From NCBI GenBank assembly GCA_943704425.1, contig CALSCP010001887.1:1-44920 (forward strand): a stretch of DNA of 44,920 nucleotides, read 5' to 3'. The stretch comes from Ministeria vibrans ATCC 50519 (lineage: Eukaryota; Protista; Filasterea). Numbering within the stretch: position 1 is the stretch's first letter; the number at the start of each line of letters is the position of its first letter. Positions 3,176-29,011 of the stretch are shown piece by piece. The translations under genes and the position numbers were made by a program. A model generated the notes under the pieces. It had not been told where the DNA came from. It worked only from the letters and a program-made list of their open reading frames with translations, and made no database searches.

Positions 3176-5092
3176 AAATGCACTCATGAAGAGCACTCAG
3201 ACTGGGTGAACGATCTTGTGGCGCTGCGAGACGGCCGTACGCTTGTGTCGGCGTCGGCGGACACGACGCTCAAGGTGTGGGAGCGCGGCGAGCGGCGATG
3301 CATCGGAACGCTGTCGGCACACTCGGACTATGTCAAGGCACTGGCGACTGGGGCGGCAACGGGGACGGTGGCCAGCGCCGCCTTTGACCGCAGCGTGTGC
3401 ATCTGGGACGTGGCGCAGGGACGCGAGTCGGGCGTGCTGCCGTCGCCCACAGTCGTGCTGGGCAACCATGAAGATTCAGTGTACGCCGTGGCCATGAGTG
3501 CGGACGGGACGCTTGTGTGTAGCGGCGGCACCGACCACCTGTGCTACCTGTGGGACGTACGCAGCGGCAAGTGTGTTACACAGCTGGTGGGACACGGCGA
3601 CACGGTGCGGGCGGTGCTGCTCAGCGGCGATGGACGACGCATGGTGACTGCGTCTACGGACGGCACTGTGAAACTGTGGGAGCCGGGCCGTCAGCAGCGC
3701 TGTGTGCGCACGCTCAATGTCCACAACGGCGAGTCGGTGTGGGCGTTAGCAGCCGACGACATGGATTTGCTTCGAACGGGGCGTCTTTTGTCGGGAGCGC
3801 GTGATGGGCGTGTGGTGGCAACAATGAGTCTCGCTGAGGCGTACACGGTGGGGGGTGTCCTGGAGACGCGCCAAGTGTGTCACGAGGGATCCGCAGTGCT
3901 GCGCCTGGCTTTGGCCACACCGTCACCACCATCATTATCAGAAGAAGAAGAAGAAGAAGAAGAAGAAAAAGAGGAGGAAGGAGACGAAGAGAAGGGAGCA
4001 GGAAGAAGGGAAGGCCTTGGTCAGTCGGCAACGGCAGTGTGGGTGGCGACGACCAGCTCAACCGTGCGTCAGTGGTCGCTTTGTACTGAACATGCGACTG
4101 TGCAGCGACAGATTGAAGGGAGTGCGCCAGTGCGACACTACCGGGTGCTCAACAACCGACGGCACGTGTTGACGTGCGACGCAACGGGTGCGCTTGACGT
4201 GTGGGATGTGTTCCAAGCGAAGCGTGTGGCGCAGTACGGGGTGTGTGTGGAGGGCGCAGTGGACACAATGACGGCCAAGGAGCGCACGGCGGCGCTGGAG
4301 CGGGCGCTGGATTTGAAGGAGGAGGAGCTGTTTGAGCAGACGGCGGTGAGTCAGTGGTTTTCGGTGGACCTGCGTTTGGGCTGTCTGATGGTGCACCTAG
4401 ACTCGCCGCAGTGCTTCCAAGCGGAGGTGCTTGCGAGTGTGGCGGGGCTGGTAGGCAAGACAGAAGAGAGCAAGGTGAACCTGGGGTCCGTCTACCTTGA
4501 CGCCCTGTTTGCGGCGTATGCCAAGGCGAAGCGGGCCGAGGCAGCAGCAGGGGCGGAGGAGAGCGGGAGCAGTGGCGGTGGGGCTCCGGCGGTGACGCCG
4601 TTTGGGGAGCAGGTGGCACTGGAGCGGGCGCAGGTGTCGGTGGTGGTGACGCGCAGTCCGGGCGCACAGGGAGTGCACCTGTGTCGTTTGCCTGTGACTG
4701 AGATGGCTCTGCCCCACCACCTGCATCGCCTCGACGAGAACTTGCCACAGTGGCTGCTTGACTCGCTCTTGCGACGGCTCATTCCGTCGACAGTGCAGCT
4801 CAAGTTATCGTTTACGCTAGTGCCAGCGCAGTGTGTGCCATCGGCGACGCACACGGCCCTTCCAGCGCTGCACGAGACGTCGCTTAATGCCCCGCGCGTC
4901 TTCCGAGTGTCGCGCATTGCCCGCTACCTTGCTGACAAGCTCAAGTTGGGCGATGCGCCCGAGACGCTCGAGCGTATTGAGGTGCTCTGTGGCGATCAGG
5001 TGTGTGCGCGCGACGCCAATGTTGCCACCCTCAAGCAGTTTGTCTGGAAGCGCTCCGACGAAATGGTCCTTTCCTATCGCCTTTTGAAGTGA
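3176..5092 (+). CDS. WDR48: WD repeat protein 48 / UAF1 (USP1-associated factor); N-terminal part not found
   Basis: HSDWVNDLV..DGRTLVSASADTTLKVW, HSDYVKALA, LNNRRHVLT, WFSVDLRLGCL, KVNLG, and a C-terminal ubiquitin-like IEVLCGDQV...ATLKQFVWK...LSYR all match the WDR48 pattern. Confidence 0.9.
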   Translation, partial: KCTHEEHSDWVNDLVALRDGRTLVSASADTTLKVWERGERRCIGTLSAHSDYVKALATGAATGTVASAAFDRSVCIWDVAQGRESGVLPSPTVVLGNHEDSVYAVAMSADGTLVCSGGTDHLCYLWDVRSGKCVTQLVGHGDTVRAVLLSGDGRRMVTASTDGTVKLWEPGRQQRCVRTLNVHNGESVWALAADDMDLLRTGRLLSGARDGRVVATMSLAEAYTVGGVLETRQVCHEGSAVLRLALATPSPPSLSEEEEEEEEEKEEEGDEEKGAGRREGLGQSATAVWVATTSSTVRQWSLCTEHATVQRQIEGSAPVRHYRVLNNRRHVLTCDATGALDVWDVFQAKRVAQYGVCVEGAVDTMTAKERTAALERALDLKEEELFEQTAVSQWFSVDLRLGCLMVHLDSPQCFQAEVLASVAGLVGKTEESKVNLGSVYLDALFAAYAKAKRAEAAAGAEESGSSGGGAPAVTPFGEQVALERAQVSVVVTRSPGAQGVHLCRLPVTEMALPHHLHRLDENLPQWLLDSLLRRLIPSTVQLKLSFTLVPAQCVPSATHTALPALHETSLNAPRVFRVSRIARYLADKLKLGDAPETLERIEVLCGDQVCARDANVATLKQFVWKRSDEMVLSYRLLK

Positions 5093-20232: not shown

Positions 20233-22359
20233 TCAGACGTGAGCGAGCGGGTCGTGAGGATTGGCGTGGCGCGCGGCAAGGCGCTCACGAGCCTCCGGGT
20301 GAGCGTCGCGTGCCGCCATCTCGTAGAGGCGCAGAGCATCGGCAAGGCGCGCCGTTTCGGAGACGCCTCGTCGGTCCTCAATGCAGCGCGCCAGACGGAA
20401 CCGCGCCTCGGCATTGCCCAGTTCGTGTCCACGCGAGTACCAGCGCACCGCCTCGGCGTCATCCAGCGCCACGCCGAGTCCCTCCTCGAGCATCTCTGCG
20501 TAGTTGAGCAGCGCCTCTTCGTCGTCCTGCTCGGCTGCCAGCAGAAACCACGAAGCGCCTTCCGCCAACGACTGCTCCACGCCACAACCCGAGCAATACG
20601 CAATTCCCAGGGCGCACTGCGCCTTGGCATATCCCTAGGAGAAAAGCAAGGACGAAACGTTAGTGAGAATAAAGAGAAGCACAGACGTGCAGCTGCGCTA
20701 ATATTACTCTGTCGGCAGCACGTCGATAGTAAGCGGCGGCGGACGCAGGCGAGACGCCTTCGAGAAGCAGACCCTGGCCGTACATGTTGGCAAGGTTGTA
20801 AACGGCATCAAGCGAGCCCTTGGCCATGGCAATGCGAAAGTGACCCTCGGCCGTCTCGTAGTCGCCCTCGACCAGACAGCAGTAGCCCAGGTTGTTGATG
20901 GCCCCTGCGTGGTGCTGCTCGGCGGCCGCACCGTACAGCTGCTTGGCCAAACTCAAGTCTGCCGGCATGCCGTGGCCCGCCTCGCAGCATACACCCAGAT
21001 TGTTCTGCGCCGCTGCGTGGCCCTGGGCTGCTGCCTTGCGGAACCACGCAACTGCCTCGCCGGCATTGCGCGCCACGCCCTTGCCACTGTAGTACAGCGA
21101 GCCCAGATTGTTTTCAGCTCGAGCGTATCCTTGCACGGCTGCTCGACGGTACAGCCGTGCTGCCCGTGCGCTTCCCGAGTCTCCCTCGCCACTTGTACTT
21201 GCTGTCTCCGCTGCCGTGTCCCCCTGGTCGCTGCTGGCGTCCACGCGGCCATGTTCGTACAGATACCCCAGATTGGTCAGTGCATCGGGGTGATCCTGAT
21301 CAGCTGCACGTCGGTAAAATGTGACGGCAGCAGCAATGTCGCACTCGCACCCTTTGCCCGCTTCGTAGAGTCGCCCGAGTGCATTGAGTGCGTCTGCGTG
21401 GTCCTTCTCGGCGGCCACACGGTACCAGTGCAACGCCGCCTGTATGTCGGTGGCCACACCAAGTCCCTTTTCGTAGCAAGCACCCACCATGTTAGCGGCG
21501 TCTGCAAGGCCAAAGCGTGCGGCGGCAAGACCACGCTTGAAGGCCAGGTCGTGCGACGGCTCGACTCCCACACCAAACATGTACTTGCACGCCTGCAGGT
21601 ACAGCGTTGTGGCACCGTCCTCATCCATGGGCTCCCAGTCTGGGGTTCCCGATGCCAATGCAAGGTTTCGGATGCCCTATGCAACATGGGGTCAATAAGA
21701 CAATTTGACGGGGGGTTTGTTGTTCGCTGCGTGCACCTGTGTCGCCTGACGCGATCCTTGCGTTGCCACATCGGCGATTTTGATGGCTGTCGTTGTCAAG
21801 AGATCTTGACACTCTTTTTCAATATCTTCCGCAAGCTCGTCCGCGCGTTTGCCAAATTTCTTATTGACAAAGTGAGTTGAGGTGCGAAGGCTGCAGAGTG
21901 ATTGACATAATAATGTGATAGAAGAAGAAGAATGCAGTCCATTGAATTGTTACAATTGATCATGGTGAGTGTTGGTCAGTCATGAACTGCCTTGAATACC
22001 TTGCAAACAGTGTAAATGCCTCAGCGAGGGGTTCGTGAAGTCGACCAAGCGACGTTTTCATGACTGCCTCGTCTTCCAGCCCTCGAATGTCGTCCTGGTG
22101 AGAGAGAATTCGATCCTGCAATGCAAAAATTCAAAAAATTCAAATGGGAAACAAGAGAAGCAGTGAACCAGCGCACCTTGACCGCCTCAAAGCGTTTTAA
22201 CAGATCATCGCCATGCTGTGGGACAGAAGAACGGAGTTGAGAAACGGGCTGAAAGTGGTTTGGCGCTGACGAAACAATCACCTTGAATTTTTTGGCGACG
22301 GACGCCGTGTGCAGACACAGTTGAACCAAAAGCTCAACGCAGCTGTCGATTGTAGTCAT
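20233..22359 (-). CDS. Sel1-like repeat (SLR) protein, multi-exon
   Basis: Many repeats of the type A.NNLG.LY..G.GV..D...A..WFRKAA.QG in ORFs 20660..21658 and 20233..20580. The upstream exons from 22359 are less certain. Confidence 0.85.
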
Positions 22360-22484
22360 TTGGTGATCAAATATAGTGTATGAAAACTATGAATATTATG
22401 AATCGATGATTATCAAATTCAATGTTTTGACAGTGTGAGTTGTTATGATTTGTAATCAACTCACAAAGCGAAACAACGAAAGGA

Positions 22485-23063
22485 TCACGCTCTTGGTCGC
22501 AGCCCTGATCCGACGATGACAGCCATGCTGCTGCCTTCAACCGAAAGACTAAAGGCAGGAGAGACGCGCACGTGCTCCAGCCGGGCATTCGTGAGGAACG
22601 CAAGGCACTGCGGTTGCGAAAAGCCAAAGCCCTCTGCTCCCTCTCCTCCCTCTCCTGACGCCTCCCAATCCCAATGAACAAAGAGCCCGCCGGGCGCAAG
22701 GAGGCGACTGAGGCGTGCAACCGTTGCGCCTGCGTCATCGACGAACGAGAGCACACTCGACGCGACAATCACACTGAACTTGTCCGTCAGACTCTCGAGC
22801 GAATTCACCGTCTCAACATTTGCCAAATTCTTAGCCGTCACTTGCTTCAACATTTCCGTCGACGTGTCCATCGCTACCACGCGCTGCGCCCGCTTCGAAA
22901 GCATTGCAGTCAATACTCCGCTTCCGCAGCCAAAGTCAAGGACCGTCTCCACTGGGACACGTCGCTGCGCCACTTCGCGCTCAAGGGACGAATACGCCAA
23001 CTCGGCGTACGCGTGCACTTGTGCGTTGTCCTCCCACGTGGCCGCCTCGTCGTCCCAATTCAT
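22485..23063 (-). CDS. Intronless class I SAM-dependent methyltransferase
   Basis: Motif I VLDFGCGSG, VVAMDTSTEML, VIVASSVLSFV and LAPGGLFVHWDW. Confidence 0.88.
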   Translation of the reverse strand: MNWDDEAATWEDNAQVHAYAELAYSSLEREVAQRRVPVETVLDFGCGSGVLTAMLSKRAQRVVAMDTSTEMLKQVTAKNLANVETVNSLESLTDKFSVIVASSVLSFVDDAGATVARLSRLLAPGGLFVHWDWEASGEGGEGAEGFGFSQPQCLAFLTNARLEHVRVSPAFSLSVEGSSMAVIVGSGLRPRA

Positions 23064-23304
23064 TGTGGCAAAAGTATTATTCGAATTTCGAATAAAAAAT
23101 AAATGAAGTGAATTCGTGAAAAATTCTCATTATTGATCGGGATTTGTGCTGCTCTTTGCTTTTTATAATGTCTTGTTTTGTCATTGGGTACAACTCTCTA
23201 TTATCTATTTAATAACTTCTTGTTAGGAATGTATTATTAACACTACAAGTAATACAATGCATTCGCGATAGGCTAGCCCCGAGCATCCTCGCCGGTAACG
23301 AACG

Positions 23305-26300
23305 TCAGGGACCGGGAACAACAGCAGGCACAACACCATTGCCGGTGCGGTAGATCAGAATGTCGCCGTCGTTCGTTGCGCCGTCCCACTCACTCCAAAT
23401 GCGACCCACAGACAAAGACTGTTTGATACGCGGATCGAGTGGCTGTAGACGACGACACAGCTCAACCGCCGAGATCACCCTCTCCCCTGCTTCAAATACC
23501 CTCTGCTTGGGTCCCAGTGCGTCCACCAGCAGCTGTGTTAACATCGTTCGCTTCTTGTCACACCACGCCGGTGCGTCCTTGATCGTACTCGTGATCATCT
23601 GCCGTCCATGACCCGCCACAGGCGCACCCTGCCGTCCCATCGTCAGCTTCTGCTCGACACGCAGTGCTCCCGCGCTGCAGAAATCACACACCACAAGTAC
23701 ACTGCACCCGCGCCACTCCACCTCATCCTGAAGTATTTGGTAGAGAGAGGCCAATGAGAAGCGAGTGACTCGTCCACCAAGCGTCGTCTGCGCATCACTC
23801 AACAAAAGTCCTCCTTTGCTGTCCTCCACGCCATGACCCAATAGGTGCACGACAAGCAGCGTGTCTTCGCCGGCACTCGTACCCACATCCTGTGCAAGCG
23901 CCCGTGCTGCAACCGTGATCGCGCTTTTGGTCACCCGGTCTCCCTGGTGTCGGTCAACAACAGTGCGCACTTTGAAATTCCGATTGGTCCACAGTTCAGC
24001 AAGCTTGTCGACACTGCGGACGACGCCGGGCAAACTGGGATACCCTTCAAGCACAGTATTGACCTTCCTGCCATACCGACTCACCCCAATAATCAATGCT
24101 GCCGCGTGGGTGTACACTGGAGAAGCACATGTAGCTATATAAATAAAAATCAGTGAAAGTGCATATTTTCGCATTCATACCATTTGGCTGTGCGGCCACC
24201 CACCACTCTTCCAGTCGCTCGTTGCACACTCGCTCGCCAGGATGCGCTGCCATCTCCGCCCGCACACTCTCCATTTGTCGGTAGTGCGCCGGTGTACGTG
24301 CAACTTCTTTTGGTGGGAACAGCGGTGACTCGCTCTTGAGTGGGTGGGCCGGCACAACCACAGGAGTGCCACGCCATCCCCATCGCAGTGACCGCGTCTG
24401 CTCACACACCTCCACACAAATCTGCTTCACAGTGCGCTGCACCCGATCTGCGTCACTGTCGTCCATCACGTCAATGCGCACAAACGACTCGTTGGCATTG
24501 AGCCGCACTCGCACAGGCGCACACCCCGCCATCGTCATGGCATTGGTGCATCGCTGTGTCGCCCGGATTGGACTGTTGAGCAGCGACGTGCGCCACAACG
24601 CCACCATCAGCAGATGAAACGTCGCAAGCGAGACGGGAAGCAGCTCGTCGTTGACAAACTGGAACAGGAAGAGCTGAGCGGGCACAACGACAGGAATGTC
24701 GAGGAAGGCAGCGTGGTGGGGAAGAAGCATGGGCACAAACAGACGGTCGTCGCGACGGAGAGCAAGACATAGTCGCTCAAGAGAGAGCATGAAGGAGGGA
24801 ACATCGGTGACATCGGCGCCAGCAAGGAGGGGAACAAGGTCAGGCTCGGGTGCAGGAAGAGAGTCAATGACAGGTTCGGAGGGATGAGAAGGTACGCTGT
24901 GGCGGTCAGACTCAAGCTCGGAACTCGACGGCTTGTCAAAAGCTCGGAACAGTTTTGCCCAGAACGAGAGAGTCTTTGTAGACTCAGAGGGCACAGCGAC
25001 AGGCGACGGCACAGGCTCGGCAGGAGGTGACACTGTTTGTACTTCCACCTCAGCCTCACGGGAAACAGCAAAGAGCTCTCCAGCACGACTGGACGGCGCA
25101 GTCCACACCAACCACTCCGCTACCTCCGCCGGAAACCCACTCTCAGACTGCTCTTTCGACGCGTCCAGCTCGCCCAGAAGCCGCGTCGTCCGCTGTATTC
25201 CATCGTCTGCGTGCTCCACTCCAGCTGCAGTCACCTCGCGCAACATCGTCTGCGCTCGCTTGCTCGTTGCGCGTCCCCACTGCGCCATCACCACCGAGCA
25301 CAACAGTTCCAGCGCTCCAATCAGTCGCGGCACATCAAACACAATCGTGTCCGTCCCCTTCACAACCTCACTCGTCGCATCCTCACGACACACCAGAATG
25401 TCCGCAGCACTCTCAAGATACGGTACAAGACCCTCTCGTATCGCACTCTCACTCGCCAACATCCCCCCCAGTCGCACCACCGGATCGTCGTTCAGCTCCA
25501 GTCCGTCCAGTGAACTCACACTCGACAGCAGCGGCACACGTCCCATTCGCGCCCATCGTCCAATCAGATCCTGTGCCGCCACAAACTCAAGCGGCAGTGT
25601 GCGATTACGCACAGCCTTGTACATCGCCGTGCTCACTGCATCCAGTCCAACTCGCTCACGGCTGCCCACCTGAAAAAACGGCACACCCCGTGTCTCGCGT
25701 GGCATCATCAGATGACTGCCAAGCACAGGTCCGACCAATCGCAAAATCTCACGCGAAACAAGCGAAACCAGATCGTCAGGGATAGTGTTCTCGGCGAACG
25801 TGTCAATGTGAGTGCCGACAATGATGACGCGGAAGTACGACTTGGCCGTGGTGGGCACCTGATGTGCAATGATGTCCGCCCACTTCGACAGGTGCTCGTA
25901 CTGTCGTTGCGCCTTGAGAGCATCGTTCATGACAGACAGGTCAAAGACAAGCACATACACCGACTCGGAGCCCATGAACAGTGCTGGAAGTGAATCGTAC
26001 ATCGACTCACCTGTCGGCAAAAACAGATCAATATTCGTCAGCACTTGCACAGGAAATGACTCCACTTTGTCTTACCTGCAAAATCAAAGGTGTCTATGTC
26101 TACGTGCTCTTCACGCAGCTCGCTCTCCAACAGTCCTCGCACAAATGCCATCTCCGTTGACATTGTGGGCTCAGCCGACGGTGCGACTGTGGGCGCGTCA
26201 CGAGATGGTGCACTGCTCACACTCGCTGGTCCAGCGTCTGCATGCGGAGCTGAAGTAGTAGGTGCAGCTGTGGTTGATGGGTGGTGAGGATCAGCCGCGT

Positions 26301-28199
26301 GGGATGGGCCAGCTGCCTCCTCATCAGCGCTGCTCGTGTCCTCCGCCACTTCCCCTTCCTTCTCCTCCGTCTTCACCCCCATCACACTCCTCAGATGAAA
26401 CTCATCCACCGGCACACTCACAAACACCCTCATTCCCTCGTGGTAAACCATCCGCAGTTTGTGCAGGCGCGTTGCCACCGACCGGTCCTCTTCGCCCGGC
26501 AGTGTCTCGCCCCTCAGCGCAGCCACCAGAGCAGTCTTGCCCGCCTCCGTCGCACCCAAAAACAGCACTTTGATCGACCGACTCACCACTGACCCACGAG
26601 CCAGTGCCGCAGAGAACGCAATGTCGGAAGGACGCAGAATGACACTGAAAGAAGAAAAGCGAGTCAATGAGTACTACATCGGTGCATTCTGTTGGATGCA
26701 GTTACGGAATGTTCAGCTCATGTGTGGGCCATTGTGCCTCACTTCCGTCTTCACAGTGCGCAATGAGTGTCTTTCCATCCGACGACAACTCAATCGCTGT
26801 AATGGTGCTACATGTTCAATACGAGGTCAGTTACACACGTACAAATAGTGTGTTTCGTACCTGTCTGTCGCACTGAGTGTCTTGAGCTGTGTTCCCTTTG
26901 CAACGCTCAGTACTTTCAAGATGTTATTTGAACCATGGAAAATGGTCTTTCCATCACGAGAGACACACACTCGTCGAAAACCGCTGAACACAAAAAACAA
27001 ATGTGTCATCTTACAATCTCAATCTTGTTTTTGCTTTGATTGTGTACTCTGAAAAGTCCACAAAAGTGCGCACACACTCTCCCGAATGCACATTCCACAC
27101 TCTGACTCCGTCAGACCCACAACTGACCACATGCGACCCATCAGAGCTATACACTGCTGATGCGACACCACTAAACCAAAATCCAGTCAGTCACTTCCAT
27201 TTCTCTCTTCCCATTCTCATACCCAAAATGACCAGTCAGTGTTTTTGTGCACTCTCCACTAACACTTGACCATAGCTTGATTGTCTTGTCTCCCGAAGCA
27301 CTGAGAATGGTCTTTCCATCGAGTGAGAATCGCACTGACCAAACCCACCTACAAATCCAATTCCATTCCAAATCCAATTCCCATTCACTCTCTTTCTCTT
27401 ACCCTTCGTGTCCCTTAAATGTCTTTTCGCACTCTTTCCTCTCAATGTTCCACAACTTCACTGTCTTGTCAGCTGAGCCACTCAGTGCTTTCTTTTCATC
27501 CGGTGAGAATTGCACATCCAACACATAACTACAACAAGAGTGAAGATCAACTCACACAAACACTGAGTCACAATCAATCGTACACTAAGTGTCCCTCTAA
27601 TGTGACTTTGCACTCTTCTCTTTCAATGTCCCACACTTTCACTGTCCCGTCACCAGAACCACTCAGTGCCTTTTTGCCATTGCGAGAGAACACGCCAGAA
27701 TACACATGGCTAAAACAAAAAATCACAACAGATTCCACGAGTGAACATTTCTTACTCTTTGTGTCCTTTCAGTGTCTTTTTGCACTCTCCACTCTCAATG
27801 TTCCACACTTTGAGTGTTTTGTCCCACGAAGCACTCAGAACACTCTTTCCATCGCATGAAACATCGACAGTGTAAATCACACTACGAATAACAAACAAAC
27901 AGTCAAAGTGATCCCAGCCAAAAAGTGTCCACTCACCTTGTGTGTCCTTTCAGGTTACGCACTAATGTTTGGTCTTTGGTCCTCCACACTTTCAGCTCTC
28001 CATCCCCTCCTCCACTGATAATCGACGTCCCATCAGGTGTCACTGCCACACCGCAAATGCCCTTGCGGTGTCCTTCGATCGACGCCAGAGGACACTCAAT
28101 CTGATCAGTTCCCGTCTCACTCTCACCAAACAGAATCACTCTGTTTGTGTGCGGATCCGCATACGCAACAGCACACTCGCCGATGCGCACGAACGGCAT
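23305..28199 (-). CDS. WD40 - Roc GTPase - COR - caspase-like (peptidase C14) multidomain Roco protein, 11 exons, ~1441 aa
   Basis: Exons 28199-27937, 27881-27756, 27709-27584, 27528-27403, 27348-27223, 27170-27048, 26983-26861, 26807-26706, 26644-26076, 26010-24181 and 24116-23305 join in frame through GT-AG introns (4326 nt). WD40: GH...W repeats. Roc: [18 protein letters not shown]|[24 protein letters not shown]-like: [17 protein letters not shown]14: [22 protein letters not shown]. Confidence 0.88.
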
Positions 28200-29011
28200 T
28201 CTACACCACCAAAGACAACGCTCAATCGTTGCAAATCGCCCTTTCGACTTCACTCGACGACAAAACAATCAAATCATTCGACAAAACAAAGAGTGAAACC
28301 GTTTTCGTTCCAAAATCCCAAAATCCACAAACAGTCATTCACAACGACGGGAGGGCATGCCACCCCCTCCGTACACGCCGACTGCACCCCCCCTGCCACT
28401 GCGTCGCATCGCATCATTTCCCAAAATAAAATATGTTCGACTGATTTTCGTCCCACAAAAAAAAAAACAAAACACTCAAACTTTTGAAGGTCAGCACAAA
28501 ACGACTCAGGACGCACAGACACACACTGGCACAGCGCACAATACAAACATGCGTACCTGGGCGTGTCGGTGGTCGGTCGCAGTGGGCGCAAACGGAGCAG
28601 AGAGTGCAGTTCGTGGCGGAAAAGAAGTCACACTCTACAACACACCATCAGCATCACTGTGCTGCTGCGTGCGGTGCACCACATCCAATGCGTACCTACA
28701 ACTTCTTAGAGTGCTTCAAATGAAATTAATAATTATTACAAATAGTCTATTCACTATAATTATATTTTTATTATTATTATTATCTATTCGTCTCGGACTT
28801 GTTATGACTTGTTATGATGTCAAAAACTGCCCAAAGAAAGAAAGATCGTAGATTGTAATCGCATGCGGCGGGCGGCATGCCTGTCGCATACTATCCAAAA
28901 AAAATAAGAAAGAATGAATAAACTAAAACGGTATTTGTGGGCAAAGTCTGGCTCATTAAAATATTATTATATTATTGTGTATTAAGAGAGAGTCCTGTCT
29001 CTTTTCCATCA

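Follow-up and report, generated by a model that had tools for sequence, protein, structure and literature searches.

The 44,920-nucleotide (nt) stretch of Ministeria vibrans ATCC 50519 analysed here (GenBank assembly GCA_943704425.1, contig CALSCP010001887.1, positions 1 to 44,920; hereafter the window) carries on its minus strand an array of WD40 repeats in which each repeat has its own exon. Such a layout raises the questions whether the exons act as exchangeable modules and to which protein they belong. A preliminary description of the locus had proposed a modular exon mechanism that diversifies ligand specificity. From this proposal the WD40 sensor, the single unit per exon and the variable residues at the junctions were retained in our analysis, but not exon shuffling as the working mechanism. 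The array was found to continue into a Roc domain, a predicted COR domain and a caspase-like domain within one predicted gene, and the differences between close paralogs were concentrated in five codons per repeat unit. We consider it reasonably probable that this is a WD40-Roc-COR-caspase-like gene with an inherited blade-per-exon layout, which diversifies by replacement at these five codons and works as a sensor, switch and protease.

The predicted gene extends from position 28199 to 23305 on the minus strand and consists of 11 exons with a coding sequence of 4,344 nt, which encodes 1,447 amino acids without an internal stop. Its ten introns measure 46-65 nt and all have GT-AG borders. The exons are as follows, with a slash marking the splice site where a donor is given:

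Exon 1, 27937..28199, minus strand: start codon ATG, N-terminal stretch and WD unit 1; donor GTGAGT in phase 2; 37.9 bits with Pfam WD40 (PF00400).
Exon 2, 27756..27881, minus strand: 126 nt, WD unit 2, a single blade with strands a-d; phase 2 on both sides.
Exon 3, 27584..27709, minus strand: 126 nt, WD unit 3.
Exon 4, 27403..27528, minus strand: 126 nt, WD unit 4.
Exon 5, 27223..27348, minus strand: 126 nt, WD unit 5.
Exon 6, 27048..27170, minus strand: 123 nt, WD unit 6, degenerate and without GH.
Exon 7, 26861..26983, minus strand: 123 nt, WD unit 7, degenerate; score of 48.5 with the family unit profile.
Exon 8, 26706..26807, minus strand: 102 nt, partial WD unit 8 (strands a-c); ends at the donor CC/GTAACT.
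Exon 9, 26076..26644, minus strand: linker and first half of Roc with the P-loop GATEAGKT and the G3 motif DTFDFAG; acceptor TTTCAG in phase 2.
Exon 10, 24181..26010, minus strand: remainder of Roc (GTHID) and predicted COR domain.
Exon 11, 23305..24134, minus strand: caspase-like Peptidase_C14 domain with His (LLGHG) and Cys (CDFCSAG) motifs, followed by the stop codon.

The six WD40 exons already described (exons 2 to 7, four of 126 nt and two of 123 nt, one unit each) were recovered at exactly the same coordinates, each preceded by AG and followed by GT, and were translated in all frames. Since the sole open frame leaves one nucleotide at the start of each exon and two at its end, the flanking introns are in phase 2. 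As described before, they share one register, which in the canonical repeats lies after G-H-x plus two bases. Beyond these exons, the donor of exon 1 and the two borders of exon 8 show the same phase. Every internal exon is symmetric and has a length divisible by 3 nt, and the earlier statement that an exon can be removed or added without a frameshift holds arithmetically for any of them. In an exon-by-exon search with PF00400 (cut-off 27 bits), exons 1-5 all scored above the threshold with 30.8-37.9 bits, exon 6 fell below it with 17.6 bits, and exons 7 and 8 gave no score; exons 6 and 7 still fit the unit profile built from the family. Unit 5 has the best-conserved scaffold among the clade-A paralogs described below. 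The N-terminal stretch of exon 1 contains a d-strand-like segment which ends in GH. The contrast drawn earlier with WDR48 was also borne out, as positions 3206-5089 of the window form a single 628-amino-acid open frame with WD40 and DUF3337.

The array was previously taken to end at a TAA stop codon. This triplet (26704-26702) sits within the donor CC/GTAACT, and the gene continues: further downstream on the same strand follow a frame with the Roc P-loop, a 672-amino-acid frame and a Peptidase_C14 frame. An eighth phase-2 intron links the WD array to the Roc exon, and two phase-1 introns follow, one after DFAG and one ahead of the caspase-like domain. At the end of exon 8 the paralogs have the donors CC/GTAAGG, CC/GTACGA or AC/GTGAGA, several of them without a stop codon and all with a phase-2 acceptor before the Roc exon. 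The WD-to-Roc junction is supported by these conserved donors and by the lack of an ATG before the P-loop. An alternative junction from the phase-1 donor GTGAGG (26742) to a CAG at about 26590 was rejected on account of the conserved phase-2 donor and TTTCAG acceptor of the paralogs, and a separate Roc gene was rejected because no in-frame ATG precedes the P-loop. A scan of window positions 22000-29000 against Rfam yielded no match.

The protein encoded in the window contains the motifs expected of a Roc domain, namely a P-loop, DxxG and the G4 motif GTHID. Sequence profiles recognised the domain weakly, with 18-26 bits for Pfam PF08477 (cut-off 27) and a weak match of the family profile to the LRRK2 Roc domain in the PDB (expect value E 1e-3). 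The Roc part of the family aligns to ROCO proteins in the databases. Pfam COR-A gave no sequence match. A structure was predicted for the unspliced frame of paralog L033 (79% identity to the window protein; alignment of 25 family sequences; predicted local distance difference test score, pLDDT, 70). When this model was compared with Foldseek, the top 24 matches were all ROCO proteins and included LRRK1 (E 6e-9), the Roc-COR structure of C. tepidum (3dpu; template modelling score 0.64 on the target), LRRK2 and Roco2 of M. barkeri, over 500-830 columns. Neighbouring clusters in the Atlas carry COR-A and COR-B as well as Roc. The model thus points to a COR domain directly after Roc, an assignment made through paralog L033 and not through the window protein itself. 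The domain in exon 11 matched Peptidase_C14 (PF00656) with E 7.4e-10 and 39.3 bits (cut-off 21.4), and the predicted caspase-like dyad would consist of the His in LLGHG at residue 1269 and the Cys in CDFCSAG at residue 1321. The caspase-like domain follows COR in 33 of the fetched paralog loci.

A search of the 29.7-Mb assembly (2,860 contigs) with one WD exon returned at least 143 WD-exon matches. Of the Roc-COR paralogs, which number at least 40 in this genome, no fewer than 20 are immediately preceded on their own strand by an array of WD exons. Forty loci were fetched and scanned with a unit profile built from the exons of the window. Among 143 units from 23 genes, 125 have AG and 118 have GT precisely at the register, against background dinucleotide frequencies of 5.5% and 6.9%; the pattern is far beyond chance. 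The exon length was exactly 126 nt in 98 of the 129 exons with both ends called, and the median intron measured 57 nt. Between close paralogs the introns differ in length by offsets which are not multiples of three (46/45, 55/57, 60/62), besides one of 45/48, and the exons stay at 126 nt. The genes sort into three clades, with sister pairs that are 95-100% identical along the whole gene. No special homogenisation of the WD region compared with the other parts was seen. Since neither flank of the window gene recurs anywhere else in the assembly, the copies are paralogs rather than haplotigs. Runs of N were found upstream of several Roc exons, and many contigs of 0.6-0.9 kb consist of WD exons and introns only, among them C2204, C1718, C1114 and C407 (L003, L004, L011, L012). 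The family is under-assembled and its copy numbers are therefore lower bounds.

Some loci depart from the common layout. The divergent member on C85 (L030, G000:C85:1900-8200) has exons of 123-138 nt, and its WD units 4 and 5 share a single exon, which suggests an intron loss within the ROCO-caspase family. Ahead of Roc, L037 (G000:C1441:52200-58000) has a 606-amino-acid frame with a Peptidase_C14 match instead of WD40, L045 (C1049) has leucine-rich repeats (LRRs) in a single 160-amino-acid frame, and L048 (C883:2400-8300) has ankyrin repeats.

The only close database proteins, from the metagenome scaffolds SCHR19-1 (ENA), were discarded as an independent lineage; their introns are nearly identical to those of the paralogs on C916 and C1344, and the proteins are therefore ascribed to the same or a very close organism. 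A profile search of 1.84 billion representatives returned four matches at E <=1e-10, of which three were short fragments and the best came from the same metagenome series. All remaining matches in that search were confined to the Roc part, so that no wider relatives appeared in it outside the organism's own samples.

The variation among these genes was analysed in six phylogenetically separate sister pairs with pairwise Nei-Gojobori counts. Between sister paralogs the amino acid differed at unit sites 42, 1, 3, 19 and 21 in 82, 76, 55, 79 and 45% of the comparisons, respectively, and at most other sites of the unit in 0-10%. The intron interrupts the codon of site 42 after its second base. Variable residues beside the junctions and around the S-x-D turn, set in a conserved scaffold, had been noticed before, and it is these five sites that carry the variation. 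Each of them holds 14-18 different residues. The pooled rate of nonsynonymous substitution (dN) over the five hot codons and site 41 was 0.48, compared with a synonymous rate (dS) of 0.108 in the scaffold. In four young pairs the histogram of per-base differences was almost zero outside the hot codons. The bases of the hot codons had diverged by 20-49% and the adjacent introns by 0.4-4%, with values of 32-34% and 0.4-0.6% in the pairs L013/L014 and L020/L021. Changes at the five hot sites were mutually independent and not clustered by exon. Many hot codons had changed at two or three bases, and their transition:transversion ratio was about 1:1.8, compared with about 1.1:1 at other exon sites.

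The unit exon opens two residues ahead of the conserved V in strand a and runs to the end of the G-H-x behind strand d. Read in the published WD40 register, it corresponds to one structural blade (strands a-d), and the intron lies in the loop that joins strand d to strand a on the top face (PMC3419727). The conserved residues V2 and D20 are flanked by sites 1/3 and 19/21, respectively. These sites correspond to codons 7/9 and 25/27 of the fungal HNWD genes, at the same 18-codon spacing; the fungal pairs flank codons 8 and 26 and have been placed in the d-a loop and in the b-c turn at the top of the propeller (PMC1805685). The hot sites also correspond to the hotspots R1-2, R1 and D-1 of Wu et al. 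(PMC3419727). Judged by this register, sites 42, 1, 3, 19 and 21 would all lie on the top face. The N-terminus encoded by exon 1 probably supplies the d strand of the eighth blade and would thereby close an eight-bladed ring.

Could the frozen scaffold and the scrambled hot codons result from a mutational process rather than from selection on ordinary mutations alone? Two forms come into question: either gene conversion is frequent and keeps the genes alike, with the hot codons shielded by selection, or a codon-targeted mutagenesis is at work. The extreme ratio of hot-codon to intron divergence in L013/L014 and L020/L021, the multiple base changes within codons and their shifted transition:transversion ratio are in line with such a process, as is the divergence of non-hot exon bases in the same two pairs, which is four to five times that of the introns. 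However, conversion tracts that homogenise a 5-kb gene would bring the hot codons along. There were no donor words among the sampled paralogs, neighbouring hot codons were unlinked, all three codon positions varied without a base-specific signature, and the intron values derive from small samples (259-475 bases with 1-3 differences). No candidate mutator came to light, although no search aimed at one was made. A templated replacement that draws on other paralogs was rejected, as the sharing of hot-residue words did not exceed chance and the hot codons showed no linkage. On this evidence we regard a mutational origin of the pattern as unlikely. Still less probable is a directed process which diversifies the five hot codons of each blade beyond selection on ordinary mutations; if true, it could mean a eukaryotic system of codon-targeted hypermutation or templated micro-replacement at work in several receptor families.

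The symmetric exons could also serve as interchangeable cassettes, with specificity arising from shuffling between or within genes or from isoforms that skip exons, a model put forward for the LRR-ROCO genes of brown algae. The arithmetic of phase and length would allow it, and many short contigs are made of WD exons alone. Nevertheless, a single order of eight units fitted all 21 labelled arrays, seven of which had at least one unit missing through gaps or missed detection. In a tree of all internal exons, the ordinals of each clade formed their own group in 17 of 18 cases. The exception concerns ordinals 3 and 4 of clade A (A3/A4), which are sister groups with a support of 0.92 and reach up to 78% scaffold identity within one gene; in addition, ordinals cannot be matched clearly from one of the three deep clades to another. 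Duplication or replacement of exons has thus occurred, but rarely and long ago, with the A3/A4 event as the one that is visible. Between sister paralogs the introns are collinear and 96-100% identical. Changed hot codons did not cluster within exons or in adjacent pairs, their observed distribution being equal to the independent expectation (all Fisher p >0.4), and pairs of hot residues were barely common to paralogs (2.7% versus 1.9% and 4.3% versus 2.5%). The short contigs are most simply explained by assembly breaks in a repeated family, in keeping with the N runs upstream of several Roc exons. Moreover, a closed propeller tolerates an altered number of blades poorly. We therefore judge a cassette function improbable, and the proposal that a modular exon mechanism diversifies ligand specificity finds no support in the fixed unit order, the grouping of ordinals and the scattered hot changes. 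Invariant exon number and order across paralogs, which the preliminary description itself had named as speaking against its proposal, is what the sampled paralogs display.

Known ROCO proteins act in endogenous signalling, and the family could likewise consist of housekeeping or developmental scaffolds, for instance regulators of cell death or of the cytoskeleton like LRRK and DAPK, whose WD40 surfaces diverged for endogenous partners. WD40 propellers are indeed general interaction platforms (PMC3419727), but the high copy number in a 29.7-Mb genome with some very recent duplicates, the concentration of replacements on the presumed ligand face with dN above dS, and the lack of sequence relatives beyond the Roc part in the exhaustive profile search outside the organism's own samples are features of conflict genes rather than of conserved housekeeping scaffolds, and make this the least probable of the three alternatives.

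We thus return to the reading of an inherited layout with codon-level diversification. The blade-per-exon organisation most likely goes back to an ancient tandem duplication of an exon-plus-intron unit, and duplications of the whole gene would afterwards have spread it to at least 20 paralogs. Present diversity would stem from amino-acid replacement at five top-face codons per blade and not from the movement of exons. In the proposed mechanism, the variable top face would bind a ligand, either foreign or altered-self, and binding would be passed on to the Roc-COR switch, whose nucleotide or dimer state would change. The fused caspase-like domains would thereby be brought together and activated by induced proximity, which may lead to a defence or cell-death response.

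Several points weigh against this reading. The splice model and its expression are predictions, and the number of blades and the mapping to the top face follow from the sequence register and from WD40 rules in the literature. The functional steps, namely ligand binding, the GTPase switch and the activation of the protease, are inferred for every member of the family. The sample covers only about half of the family and comes from a draft assembly with gaps, and seven labelled arrays out of 21 lack units. The set of hot sites was first recognised in the same data in which it was measured, and the pooled dN included the moderately variable site 41. The dN and dS values are pairwise counts on six pairs and not estimates from a codon model on a tree. 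Finally, the excess over introns is at least 50-fold in two pairs, above what selection on ordinary mutation usually produces, and another process may contribute.

The closest parallel in gene structure are the ROCO genes of brown algae, in which exons of 72 bp in phase 2 each encode one LRR and LRR-Roc-COR is the sole architecture (PMC11378527, PMC3341825). This comparison had been made before and proved apt, all the more as the window gene is itself a ROCO gene. Both systems combine a Roc-COR core with an N-terminal repeat sensor, one repeat per symmetric phase-2 exon of constant length, and form multigene families for which a role as immune receptors is proposed. The algal LRRs form an open solenoid with a variable number of repeats, and exon trees that mix positions are the evidence for shuffling. 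In M. vibrans, by contrast, 126-nt exons encode WD40 blades of a predicted closed propeller with number and order fixed at eight, the exon tree keeps positions apart within clades, a caspase-like domain stands behind COR, and the diversity resides in single codons.

In the mode of diversification, the gene resembles the fungal HNWD/NWD NOD-like receptors (NLRs) such as HET-E and HET-D of Podospora anserina, which are likewise WD40 sensors of a multigene family linked to cell death (PMC1805685, PMC2873952). Two hypervariable codon pairs, each flanking a conserved residue and spaced by 18 codons, lie on the top face in both; the positively selected pairs of the fungal genes have their counterparts in sites 1/3 and 19/21. 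Unlike the fungal proteins with their NACHT ATPase and N-terminal HET effector, the M. vibrans protein has a Roc-COR switch and a C-terminal caspase-like effector. The fungal repeats are intronless, near-identical and in tandem, and change in number as they are reshuffled under concerted evolution, whereas each repeat here has its own exon, their count is fixed, repeats within a gene are on average about 39% identical, and it is the units of equal ordinal in different paralogs that resemble each other. The M. vibrans genes also have a fifth hot codon, which the intron interrupts. An array in the HNWD style does occur in the same genome: at G000:C2017:48305-48898, five WD units with a 126-nt period and no introns lie within a 1,092-amino-acid open frame.

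The combination of a repeat sensor, a nucleotide-dependent switch and a caspase-type protease is shared with the Apaf-1 apoptosome and with prokaryotic NTPase conflict systems that have WD40 or TPR sensors (PMC7159879). In Apaf-1 the switch is an AP-ATPase, and the caspase is a separate protein brought in through CARD; here the switch would be a Roco GTPase, the protease is part of the same polypeptide and the order is reversed, with the sensor at the N-terminus. The animal proteins LRRK1, LRRK2 and DAPK1 have the tandem Roc-COR fold in common with the family, LRRK2 also has WD40 and DAPK1 is linked to cell death. They differ from the M. vibrans family, which lacks a kinase, has WD40 at the N-terminus instead of the C-terminus and forms a large, fast-diversifying set of paralogs; sequence similarity to animal ROCO proteins is confined to Roc. 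ROCO cores fused to effectors of the caspase type or of other death or immune kinds were also found in the database proteins P0025, P0026, P0012 and P0030 (Roc-COR-CHAT-AAA, Ras-Roc-COR-TIR, ANK-Roc-Death-Peptidase_C14), and ROCO cores with death-type effectors therefore exist elsewhere. With these proteins the Roc part alone aligns (E 1e-8 to 1e-4), and their sensors differ. Our literature search returned no paper on a WD40-Roc-COR-caspase family or on a blade-per-exon WD40 gene and none that combined 'WD40' with 'one repeat per exon'; the sole paper with both 'Roc-COR' and 'caspase domain' was PMC7159879.

Downstream of the gene, between its stop codon (23305) and the ATG of the next minus-strand frame (23063), lies a stretch of about 55 nt (23144-23200) which recurs in at least 35 other places of the genome with 83-91% identity. 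On the minus strand it contains CCAAT-like and TATAAAAAG-like motifs and could represent either a small dispersed element or a core promoter shared among genes. On visual inspection of its translation, the minus-strand frame at 22485-23063 resembles a small methyltransferase dependent on S-adenosylmethionine with a GCGSG motif, and that at 20660-21658, also on the minus strand, a repeat protein of the Sel1/TPR type.

If the proposed reading is true, M. vibrans possesses a large protist family of single-chain receptors in which a sensor, a GTPase switch and a caspase-like domain are united. One polypeptide would then do the work of the multi-protein apoptosome and of NLR inflammasomes, with a Roco GTPase in place of the ATPase of the STAND class. 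The same WD40 surface codons would have been used independently of the fungal allorecognition NLRs, which would make the family a clean natural experiment for studying the diversification of propeller receptors. Two notions that are commonly treated as one would also come apart: the repeat-per-exon structure permits shuffling, yet it would not be the source of diversity in this family, and similar gene structures should be interpreted with caution.

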